A stretch of DNA of 62,247 nt, the filler included, from Choristocarpus tenellus KU-1152 (Eukaryota; Protista; Phaeophyceae), in the NCBI GenBank assembly GCA_964200185.2. It is 9 parts of 9 records of this genome, joined end to end, with 100 filler letters (N's around TTAATTAATTAA, not from the genome) between each part and the next. Parts side by side here need not be neighbours in the genome. Positions count along the whole stretch, not along the records: positions 20,253 to 24,465 come from CAXNAD020015657.1; 8 more parts are not named here. One strand, 5' to 3'. The translations under genes and the position numbers were made by a program. The notes beneath the pieces are model-generated. The model worked only from the letters and a program-made list of their open reading frames with translations, did not search any database and was not told the DNA's origin. Each line of letters opens with the position of its first letter. The stretch's first letter is position 1. Below, piece after piece: positions 20,253-24,465 of this stretch.

Positions 20253-20262
20253 GGGGGGGGGG

Positions 20263-20297
<35 letters not shown>

Positions 20298-20309
20298 GAG
20301 GTGGTCCTC

Positions 20310-20649
20310 CTCACCCTGATGCTCTGGCTTGTTCATCAGCTGCCTCTCTTCGTATGTCTGTCCTGCTATACCTACCCTTACCGGAGAATTAATTCTTCCA
20401 GCTATTGCCAATCACTTGCTTGGCAAAAATGGTGCATTATTCATAGCAATTATCATAATATTTTCGTGCTTAACCACTGCAGTTGCACGTAATAGTATTT
20501 ATGCAAAATATTTATGCACTTTCAAATCCTTTGGAAATAAGAAATTCAAGAAAGTTTTACTAGTAACTACTGCATTCATTTATAATTTCATTATTAGATT
20601 TTGCTCACCCTGATGCTCTGGCTTGTTCATCAGCTGCCTCCCTTCGTAT
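20310..20649. repeat. 46-bp direct duplication (20310-20355 / 20604-20649) of the eIF4G exon end plus donor, flanking an insert
   Basis: ctcaccctgatgctctggcttgttcatcagctgcctc(t/c)cttcgtat occurs twice with one mismatch. Confidence 0.95.
20356..20603 (+). pseudogene. brnQ: Bacterial brnQ-like (branched-chain amino acid transport system II carrier) gene fragment
   Basis: AT-rich insert translating ELILPAIANHLLGKNGALFIAIIIIFSCLTTAVARNSIYAKYLC...VLLVTTA and, after a frameshift, SFIISLLDF. This matches the BrnQ G..L..I..(A/S)CLTTA motif and the following TM segment. Recognised from memory, not from a search. Confidence 0.75.
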
Positions 20650-23600
20650 CTCTTCTAAGGTCTTTGCCTTAGCTTGCACACGCCGTGGCTTCCAGTCGAG
20701 TGACTAGTCAACAATGTCAAGAGGAAACAGAGATCAAGAGGTTTTGAAGAAAAAAAAATAGGTCAAGCCTGGGGGGAGGGGGAGGGGGGAAGAGCCAGCT
20801 AAAGGGGGACACAATTCATCACAACGACATTAACAGATCTAGATCTAGGCCACACTCTACAGCCAGGTTACATTATTTTCGTTCTATTTTTTTAAAAACA
20901 TAAAAAGAGAAAAAATCAAATCATCGCATCACCCGCCCTTACCACAGACAGCTAACTCCCTAACCTCCTTCCATACCTCTAAATTCCCATGCAGACTATA
21001 CACTTCACCAAAATGTGACCCTCATCTATTCATTCATTCATTCCAAAGAGGAAGTTAGACACACAAGCTCATTCAAGCAAAACATCAACAAAAAAAGCAT
21101 CTAAAACCCTAACCCTAACCTCCACCTATACGCCACAAACCTCTTAGACAAAAAAAACATCAACACAATTAACCTCTCAAGAACAAATCCATCACCCACC
21201 GCCCTTACCTACCCTCACCTCAAGAAACACCACCAACCCTAACAAACCACAACCTCCTTCAGGGTCAAAAAATATCCACCACCACCAGAACACACACACC
21301 CCTCCCTCCTCCTACCAGGAATACCCTTGCTCTATGTTCAACTCCACTCATCCAACCCCAACCCCATCCCCAACCCCAATCCTCACCCTCAGCTCCTCAA
21401 GATCCCTGATCATATATCGCATACGGGAATTAAGCTTGGTATTGTTGGCATGCCTCTCAAGCAGACCAAAAACCGCCTTCATGTATGTAGCGTTCTTGCC
21501 GCTATCCAGCCTCTTCCCCACTGTTGTCATCAGCTTGCCCAACGCCTATCAGTACCATACAACATCAAGATTAACAAGCTTCAGAGTAAAATAAAGAAGA
21601 GCAAAGAGAAGTGATGCTGTCCTTCCTGTATAAAACCTAGAATACACCCAGAAACATTTAAAAATCAAAAACATTCTGACCCCAGAAAACTTTTTAAACA
21701 CTCTCATTCACCTGCAAAAATCCATCAGAGTGCGACTTGTACTGCCCCCCTCCCCCTCAATACACAAAAGAAGTCATTTTCTCAGAAAGTTCAAATAAAA
21801 TAAAAAATCAATCTGTGGAAAAAAAAAAACATATCTGTCGTACACTGATGCACAACAACAAAGCTCCAAACAAAATCCTACTCACCTAACCCTAACCCTT
21901 AGAAAGAAATAAAATCAACAAAAAGCAACATGAACTCAATCATCAACAGTACAAACGCCCATACCTACAAGAAACAAACCCTAACCCTAACCCTAACCAT
22001 ATGAACAAGACACTATCATTACATACACATGAATCACAGAAGTATACACCATTACAGCAAGGAGAATAATTTGTCACATTGTCACACAAAAACTCTCCAA
22101 TAGACTTAATGGGCTTGTTTTCTGAAATGAGATCAATTTTTTAATCAATGGAACAGTTCCAGTCGATGACATTTACCAGCTTACACCCTTGTACCATCAT
22201 CCCACCAAAAAAAATAATCATAATGATAATCACTGCAATGAAAAAATAATATATATACCAAAAGTAACAAAAAGAATGGCAGTGATAATAAAAATGTAAT
22301 ACATAGTAACACTAACAATAATACAATAAAAATAAAAATCATTCCCATTACACAGTCAATAAAAATAAAACTCTCCATCAAGAGCACACAAGGCACCATA
22401 AATCTCTTCATAACATTTTCTTCCAGCATATCTTCTCCCAGTCTCACTCCTACAGCCCTAACCCCATCCCCTTCAACCACTACATCACCACAGTGCTACT
22501 AAAACACTAAAACACTCTAGAAACAGTACAACAAACCACCCTCAAAATGAATCACTCTACCACCAGGATAACTAAATAAAACCAACAGAGTCCTTACAAA
22601 CAGCTGCCCAGCAACACACTACAAACTCCTTAAATTTCAACATACCCCTCCATGACAGAACATTACTCACTAATCCACCACTTTAACAAAACCACACATA
22701 AAAACACTCTAAGCACTCTAAGCACATGCAGATTCATTTTTACAAAACTCTTCCTATTGAGGACGAGATACCTACACTCTCACAAAAACTACCACACCCA
22801 ACACAACATAGACACCCCCACACAAGAACTGCCACACCCAACACAACATGGACACACACACACAAAGTGTACCTCCAGGTTAGTCTCATCCACGTCACCA
22901 CTGATGAACTTGAGCCCCTTGAATTGTCCTAACTTGTCCAATGTCTTTTCCGCATTGAGCAACTTCTCAATACACCTCTGTTACACAAAACAGTTACAAA
23001 AAACATTTACATGAAAAAATAGAAAAAAGTACATACAACACCTCGATTAGCAGATGGGCATATTGTCTATCATACCATACACAGTACAATTCAGAATAGT
23101 TTTTTTCAAAACGTCAAACACATGCAATACACAGCAACATACCACAATTAAATTAAACATGCCGAAATTACATTTACACTACATATCATTTTCTCGGCTC
23201 AATGTTATTTTCGGTTAGGGTTAGGGTTAGGGTTAGGGTTAGGGTTAGGGTTAGGGTTAGATACAAATCACACCAATGACAAGACTGATCGTGAATATAA
23301 TCAGGTTCACATGTCAAACTTTCAAACCAATACATAATTCAAAGGGATGACATCTCCACACACCCTACTGATGTAAAAATAAATAAAATACTACAGTACA
23401 AAAAAGGTACAATGAACAAGTTATATACTAACCAAAATCCCATAAAAGGTACAATGAACAAGTTATAATAATCTAAATTCAATAAAAGGTACAGTGCAAC
23501 TCCTCTCATTTCCAAGGTAACCAACTCTCCCTCGAGAGTGTGTACACGCCACCTCAGTTCAGTAAGTGCCAACACGAACAAAAGACATTAACCAATCAGA

Positions 23601-24059
23601 GTAAGTGCCAACACGAACAAAAGACATTAACCAATCAGAGTCATTTTCAAGATCCTAACATGCAAACATCGGAGAGATCAAAAACCCTAACCCTAACCCT
23701 AACCCTAACAATCACCTAAGGAATCTCTAAACCTAAACCAAACATCCACAGGAGTTACACCACAACCAAATGCAATCAACTAACAAAAAAGATTAATATA
23801 TACCACACAAAAACATAAGTCCACAACCTCATTAAACAGATGTCCTCCAATCCCCCAACCAAGACCAACTTTGAAAAACTACTCAAAAACAAAACATGAA
23901 TATAATATGTAGTGCGTTTGCCATTATCAACTACATTTACATATCTGCATATGTGAGTCTTTGTATGTATTTGTTCACCTGGATAACGTTCTCCTTGAGA
24001 ATGTAGACCTTACACAGCTCGCCAATGAACTGGATGTATCCCAACATCCTCCTCTTCAA
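20609..24059 (-). CDS. eIF4G: Eukaryotic translation initiation factor 4G, MIF4G region (partial, 4 exons)
   Basis: GT-AG exons 24059-23979 (LKRRMLGYIQFIGELCK), 22977-22873 (RCIEKLL...DETNLE), 21545-21387 (ALGKLMTTVGKRLD...SRMRYMIRDLEELR) and 20703-20609 (WKPRRVQAKAKTLEEIRREA) splice in frame. Confidence 0.93.
23213..23260 (+). repeat. Interstitial telomere-type (TTAGGG)7 array in an eIF4G intron
   Basis: GG(TTAGGG)7TTAG. Confidence 0.95.
23561..23641. repeat. 39-bp tandem duplication
   Basis: agtaagtgccaacacgaacaaa(a)gacattaaccaatcag occurs twice. Confidence 0.9.
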
Positions 24060-24375
24060 CTGGAAAAAATGACATCCAGGTATCAGGTTGCAAAACGCCA
24101 TCCACACAATAAGTACAACATACAGTACCAGTGTAAAAGAAAGTCAGAGAGGAGTCATAACAAACCTACTTGGGACCATACACCACATCATAAAAAATCA
24201 CATTTTCACTACACATTTTTTCAACTCATCTCAAGAAAATAAAAATACAACACAACTCGGAACACATACCCACATCTAACCCTAACCCAACCTATCCTAA
24301 AAGGTGACACAGACAATGACCAACCCAGGGGTGTGCGGGCCTCCCTCTTGGCATATTAGATATACAATCCTACAC

Positions 24376-24386
24376 GCTCAATCTGT

Positions 24387-24417
<31 letters not shown>

Positions 24418-24465
24418 AGGGGGGGGGTCTACACCGGGGTGTACATTGAGGACCTGATCAGGAGA
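24376..24465. mobile_element. MITE family B fragment, cut by contig end
   Basis: Long G-run + GTCTACACCGGGGTGTACATT..GACCTGATCAGG. Confidence 0.7.

Follow-up and report, generated by a model that had tools for sequence, protein, structure and literature searches.

Positions 20253 to 24465 of the window (the whole stretch of DNA that was analysed, 62,247 nucleotides) are identical to the GenBank contig CAXNAD020015657.1, which has 4213 nt and belongs to assembly GCA_964200185.2. This piece carries part of an eIF4G-like gene on the minus strand and, at the start of one of its introns, a fragment of a Rickettsiaceae brnQ gene that lies between two copies of a 50-nt direct repeat (Table 1).

Table 1. 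Features of the eIF4G contig, in window positions, with the content of each and the basis of its borders.
Feature	Positions	Strand	Content and basis
Poly-G run with one C	20253..20296		44 nt at the left end of the contig, where the assembly stops; direct reading
Presumed original intron start	20297..20309	-	13 nt after the second GTGAG; direct reading; X1 and X2 contigs start at 20317 and 20321
Copy 1 of the duplication	20310..20359	-	Last 45 nt of the eIF4G exon and the GTGAG donor, copied and now intronic
Filler	20360..20376		Between copy 1 and the bacterial segment
brnQ (LIVCS carrier) fragment, Rickettsiaceae	20377..20603	+	227 nt; codons about 251-326 of 375; antisense to eIF4G; piece of a pseudogene
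Copy 2 of the duplication	20604..20653	-	GTGAG donor in use (20608-20604), preceded by the final 45 nt of the exon
eIF4G exon, 95 nt	20609..20703	-	Encodes SLDWKPRRVQAKAKTLEEIRREAADEQARAS plus 2 nt; both borders from spliced contigs
Intron	20704..21386	-	Between the exon that ends MIF4G and the 95-nt exon; X3 contig joins ...GAGCTGAGG to 20703
eIF4G exon, end of the MIF4G domain	21387..21545	-	Encodes ...LNSRMRYMIRDLEELR; 3' border from a spliced contig, 5' border predicted (AG and frame)
Predicted further MIF4G exon	23979..24059	-	Encodes LKRRMLGYIQFIGELCKVYILKENVIQ; Pfam MIF4G E 0.022 on the ORF; AG/GT borders by reading

Host gene, flanking duplication and contig ends

The ORF at 21348-21542 on the minus strand matches the Pfam MIF4G domain (PF02854) with an E-value of 6.1e-5 over profile positions 148-200 of 203, a score under the whole-domain cutoff because it comes from one exon only. 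The best PDB matches of this exon were human eIF4GII and eIF4G1, in agreement with the eIF4G gene named in the original prediction, and the collection's gene model for the contig also carries PF02854. The exons were searched one by one rather than as a joined eIF4G model; the PDB search with the 31-residue exon (20609-20703) gave no match, and the ESM Atlas look-alikes of the MIF4G exon were weak, animal-leaning matches only. Furthermore, a W-x-P-R-R motif with an acidic stretch behind it lies right after MIF4G, an arrangement typical of eIF4G. The eIF4E-binding motif and the MA3/W2 domains, by which eIF4G is told from other MIF4G proteins, fall outside the 4.2-kb contig.

Four runs, all from one study (X1-X4), contain parts of the stretch, and their Logan contigs, rather than reads, were compared with the window. 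A spliced contig of 1297 nt with a depth of 1071 in X3, and one of 151 nt in X4, match 20608-20704 with no differences, and continue on one side into the end of the upstream exon (...GAGCTGAGG, 21387) and on the other side into an exon outside the piece; exon borders were set allowing for one shared G at each joint. These spliced mRNA contigs define the exon, its donor and the MIF4G exon upstream, and thereby show the host gene to be an expressed eIF4G-like gene. The contigs stop exactly at the donor, which identifies the duplicated segment as the 3' end of the exon plus GTGAG, as had been described, and the mRNA is spliced at the GTGAG of copy 2 and skips the insert, as expected from the intact donor that had been claimed.

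The two copies of the direct repeat are identical at 48 of 50 nt, with an exact match over the first 37 nt and mismatches at 20347 versus 20641 and 20356 versus 20650, while no exact repeat of more than 16 nt arose when the piece was shuffled 50 times. The near-identical duplication of 46 bp noticed earlier is therefore real, and its full length is 50 nt, 46 being the stretch up to the second mismatch. The sequence between the copies (20356-20603, 248 nt; about 244 nt between the 50-nt copies) shows a GC content of 30-32%, in comparison with 39% in the remainder of the piece and 54% in the eIF4G exon, and the description of an AT-rich insert of 248 bp stands (32% GC against 39% in the rest of the piece). 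The insert begins at intron base 6, just after the working donor.

According to the DNA comparison, the filler (from 20356 or 20360 to 20376) has no counterpart in the bacterial loci or in other parts of the piece. A near-duplication within it, CCTACC/CTTACC, may represent brnQ sequence that has diverged. The insert ends show neither an inverted repeat nor an A/T tail, and the sole coding similarity of the insert is to brnQ; without terminal repeats or an A-tail, a transposon or retroposon as the source of the duplication was ruled out. No Rfam family was found in the piece.

The stretch 20253-20312, which includes the left poly-G tract, was masked as repeat when public contigs were aligned to the window. 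A second long poly-G run (24389-24428) is found near the right end of the contig; it is internal, with 37 non-G bases after it. Because a 3' dark-cycle tail of an Illumina read would not be expected at the left end of the plus strand, and because the right-hand tract is internal, the left tract may be a natural, native homopolymer. The runs at both ends of the contig may be natural homopolymers where assemblies break, or joins made by the assembler.

Telomere-type TTAGGG/CCCTAA arrays are present in both orientations in the eIF4G introns (23213-23260, 23683-23709, 21977-21998, 21105-21120, 21885-21899 and 24276-24288). An inverted pair of them (23213-23260 and 23683-23719) flanks about 430 nt in which 39 nt are duplicated perfectly in tandem (23561-23638), and this unit may represent a small mobile element whose ends resemble telomeres. 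In addition, a G-rich motif (20768-20790) and a CCCTAA stretch (21100-21127) match many loose-ended other contigs in X1-X3, and one other contig in each of X1 and X3 has the same 26 nt between the two motifs; they are dispersed multi-copy elements of the genome or of the community.

A Rickettsiaceae brnQ fragment and its decay

Frame 1 is open, with no stop, across the insert, and its translation reproduces the peptide quoted in the original prediction. This peptide matches Pfam Branch_AA_trans (PF05525) with 28.3 bits (cutoff 22.3, E 1.1e-6) and TIGR00796 (livcs) with an E-value of 2.9e-8, the latter far under the 243-bit full-length cutoff, as expected for a fragment. The alignment covers profile positions 259-322 of 429 and the fragment keeps an FSCLTTAVA motif, so that the brnQ-like identity and the (A/S)CLTTA signature proposed for it, here SCLTTAVA, are both upheld.

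Scanning prokaryotes with a single genome for each species gave five loci, all of them in Rickettsiaceae-labelled MAGs, with 82-92% protein identity. Homology at the DNA level is confined to 20377-20603, with 93.5% identity over 230 columns to locus L002 (JALZUG010000002.1, assembly GCA_023301685.1), 91% to L008 (a 54-kb ENA contig, ERZ24894575, ctg21090l) and 89% to L001. A maximum-likelihood tree shows the window fragment as sister to L002 (support 88/83) inside the Rickettsiaceae MAG clade, and nothing closer than the L002 protein was found among 5.8 billion protein clusters. The Rickettsiales-like affinity claimed from the sequence is thus borne out by a sister position to a Rickettsiaceae MAG with up to 93.5% DNA identity, and the insert is a fragment of a Rickettsiaceae brnQ gene. 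Ca. Megaira, which had been given as an example of the donor, is unsupported: BrnQ of named Ca. Megaira (about 51%) and Ca. Tisiphia is 51-52% identical to the fragment, versus 92% in the unnamed clade, and therefore the donor belongs to an unnamed Rickettsiaceae lineage.

The rest of the 4.2-kb contig has no other similarity to the bacterial loci. In JGI metagenome contigs, an exact-pattern scan with the 32-nt core of the repeat gave no match, and a protein-guided scan with the fragment gave no relative, with no empty or filled site elsewhere.

Two of the contigs with brnQ of this clade show peculiarities of their own. L006 (ENA ERZ1742291, NODE_344506, 560 nt, coverage 0.87) is a mosaic contig with 263 nt of the brnQ clade (L006 positions 183-445; 94% identical to L001) flanked by an unrelated stretch of 22% GC on one side and a stretch of 49% GC on the other; it represents a low-coverage chimera or else another brnQ fragment in a foreign context. 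In L008, SAICAR synthase and a class I tRNA synthetase are called in pieces and brnQ is called from an internal start (241 aa); these broken gene calls could be long-read indel errors or pseudogenes.

Relative to all seven relatives compared (L001-L005, L008 and L009; L006 ends before the site and was left out), the fragment lacks 2 nt between 20575 and 20576. A second indel, a 1-nt deletion relative to the bacterial relatives, probably lies between 20382 and 20383. The single frameshift reported earlier is therefore real, and it is probably one of two indels. A frameshift shared with the relative P0080 was ruled out, the P0080 sequence and its DNA (L008) being intact at the site. States found only in the fragment were judged against five to eight bacterial relatives per site; they include CTT>CGT (Leu>Arg) at 20489, in the codon that follows the CLTTAVA motif, where Leu is invariant in the eight relatives that cover the site, ATT>TTT (Ile>Phe), which is absent from the bacterial relatives, and two or three synonymous changes.

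Instead of a complete carrier ORF (about 375-440 aa with 12 membrane helices), only codons about 251-326 are found, with two deletions. Two frame-breaking deletions in 227 nt make the copy non-functional, and the brnQ piece, as read from its frame, is functionless and decayed. These deletions may have arisen during the repair or by drift afterwards.

The differences between the copies were also considered as a sign of age. Copies 1 and 2 vary at 20347, 20353 and 20356 versus 20641, 20647 and 20650, two of these sites being fixed and 20353 polymorphic, and all three are third codon positions of the eIF4G frame (AGG/AGA, ATA/ATT and GAG/GAC), a pattern with a chance of about 1 in 27. Judging from this pattern, copy 1 may have been templated from another allele or a paralogue during repair; alternatively, the exon copy could have undergone synonymous drift after the event. 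Since the third-position sites are explained no worse by copying from a second allele than by decay, the mismatch between the copies speaks only weakly for age. The original prediction had taken frameshift and mismatch together as marks of an aged integration: its first half agrees with the degenerate state of the fragment, and its second half carries little weight.

Recovery in other samples and alternative readings

The insert was recovered in two further samples. The X1 contig (324 nt, depth 14) covers 20317-20640 and the X2 contig (458 nt, depth 5.64) covers 20321-20778, that is, insert, copy 2, exon and the start of the upstream intron; each aligns with no gaps and one difference. In both contigs the difference is an A for T at 20353, in copy 1, and otherwise they show the same indels and filler as the window. 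This SNP indicates that X1 and X2 are not the data behind the GenBank contig.

The depth of the host flank is 24.2 in X1 and 6.65 in X2, versus 14 and 5.64 for the insert. The 58% ratio of insert to flank in X1 may reflect polymorphism, composition bias or an inflated flank mean. With a depth near that of the host flank, the insert is low-copy, and behaves neither as a repeat nor as a sequence at the depth of a separate symbiont. A multi-copy host repeat, named earlier among the findings that would overturn the integration, is ruled out by these depths in X1 and X2. The same indels in two further samples argue against a one-off chimera or fresh contamination, and the same deletions, filler and joints, near host depth in the X1 and X2 contigs, favour a real integration over contamination, as had been suggested.

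The 37-nt exact repeat is longer than the Logan k of 31, and therefore Logan contigs cannot prove which copy joins what. On the right side, the insert is continuous into the exon and intron in the GenBank and X2 contigs, across a repeat that exceeds this k. On the left side, the GenBank contig shows the 50-nt host copy and 13 nt before the poly-G run, and neither Logan contig reaches these 13 nt. The X1 contig passes through the shared core without a second incoming branch, which fits a short dead-end clipped at the homopolymer, or no left flank at all.

These features bear on an assembly artefact, in which symbiont and host reads would have been joined via the shared 37-nt node, or a graph loop threaded into the eIF4G contig. 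Besides the length of the repeat relative to k, the short contig with its poly-G end and only 13 nt beyond copy 1, the lower insert depth in X1 (14 versus 24.2) and the origin of all runs in one study would be compatible with it. However, both junction types are found in two samples at 5-14x, so that host-derived sequence lies on both sides in real molecules, and junctions, filler and indels are identical in three assemblies, where a chance chimera would not recur in this way. Furthermore, the bacterial loci show no copy-like (repeat-like) sequence beside the matching part of brnQ, and deletions such as those of the fragment are not expected in the gene of a living symbiont. We regard an artefact as unlikely.

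Slightly less probable still is a real integration at another locus, where the insert with its flanking repeats would belong to a divergent allele, a paralogue or a duplicated piece of eIF4G that was merged with this contig via the 37 nt. The three differences at third codon positions are what a second, selected coding copy would show, and the X1 insert depth of 58% of the flank points the same way; but copy 1, with only the last 45 nt, is an incomplete exon, the X2 contig leads without a branch from the insert across copy 2 to unique intron sequence (75-138 nt), and the GenBank contig is likewise continuous for 3.8 kb.

It is very improbable that the insert has acquired a use, be it as a new exon, as an antisense transcript or as a plus-strand ORF of 75-94 aa. 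Frame 1 is open across the whole insert and the gene caller predicted a 75-aa product; however, this open frame crosses two frameshifts relative to brnQ, the mRNA skips the insert, and X3 and X4 have no RNA contig over 20323-20602, although the depth of the eIF4G mRNA reaches 1071. The reverse direction, a host eIF4G snippet inside a bacterial genome with the contig bacterial at its left end, is the least credible of all, because, although nothing is assembled beyond copy 1 and the left context is formally open, the brnQ piece is short (227 nt) and enclosed by host sequence, its depth matches the host, and the right side leads into 3.8 kb of an intron-rich eukaryotic gene.

Origin of the insert and comparison with known systems

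A genuine nuclear capture of symbiont DNA in the host genome is the best explanation (probability about 0.7). A scrap of the chromosome of an intracellular Rickettsiaceae bacterium would have been captured in the host nuclear genome at the start of an eIF4G intron, leaving a 46-50-nt tandem duplication whose joint contains about 17-21 nt of filler and the 227 nt of brnQ, antisense to eIF4G. The upstream copy keeps exon and donor intact, so that splicing takes out the insert and the second copy together with the rest of the intron and leaves a normal eIF4G mRNA.

We infer that the event was a break repair with captured foreign DNA. A duplication of 46-50 nt is much longer than typical end-joining footprints, and this points to a staggered break or to template-switching repair. 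In a first possible route, a break with long staggered ends would have been filled in and a stray bacterial fragment ligated; in a second one, template-switching repair, by polymerase-theta end joining or microhomology-mediated break-induced replication, would have copied bacterial DNA. No microhomology was found at the right junction. The homopolymer tract 13 nt downstream of the donor, if native, would be a plausible cause of fork stalling and breakage. On balance we lean towards a heritable nuclear relic of the unnamed Rickettsiaceae lineage, left by template-switching or polymerase-theta-type repair at a fragile site in an essential gene, with the foreign DNA at the joint of the 46-50-nt tandem duplication and 13 nt from a long homopolymer.

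If genuine, the nuclear capture would offer a small, fully readable bacterium-to-eukaryote junction, with both joints, the filler, the long duplication and the nearby homopolymer, and would bear on the route by which foreign DNA enters nuclear genomes. It would also link the eukaryote, at present or at an earlier time, with one particular unnamed Rickettsiaceae clade, and the donor bacterium may still live in the host. Presence or absence of the insert could be scored as a marker across populations and related species, and a heritable relic would be a datable marker of the association between host and symbiont. The insert adds no host function.

Symbiont-to-nucleus transfer, from Rickettsiaceae included, is already documented and the general phenomenon is not new; the notable points here are the small size, the position at the donor of an essential gene and the long flanking duplication. 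In NUMT/NUPT filler capture, short non-nuclear DNA is ligated at double-strand breaks with little or no microhomology, often in introns and neutrally, whereas the source here is bacterial and not organellar. The Wolbachia nuclear transfers (nuwts) of insects and nematodes are chromosome fragments fixed in host nuclei, mostly non-functional and decaying. The present fragment resembles them as a decayed piece of the chromosome of a Rickettsiales endosymbiont, but the donor family is Rickettsiaceae and the host group is probably different; a long junction duplication is not known as a usual feature of nuwt reports. In relation to the BrnQ/LIVCS carriers (PF05525, TIGR00796), the fragment is a relic that represents about 20% of the carrier, with two deletions, and lies antisense in a eukaryotic intron.

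The nuclear genome of Volvox carteri contains about 9 kb of rickettsial DNA with four gene-like regions, which is intergenic, was verified by PCR in symbiont-free strains and was taken as a sign of an endosymbiont, either present or former (Kawafune et al. 2015, PMC4324946). There, as probably here, low-copy and partly degenerate Rickettsiaceae DNA is integrated in a eukaryotic nuclear genome (PMC4324946). Unlike the Volvox carteri insert, the one described here is known from contigs, contains 227 nt of a single gene, and occupies the first intron bases of an essential gene with a 50-nt flanking duplication.
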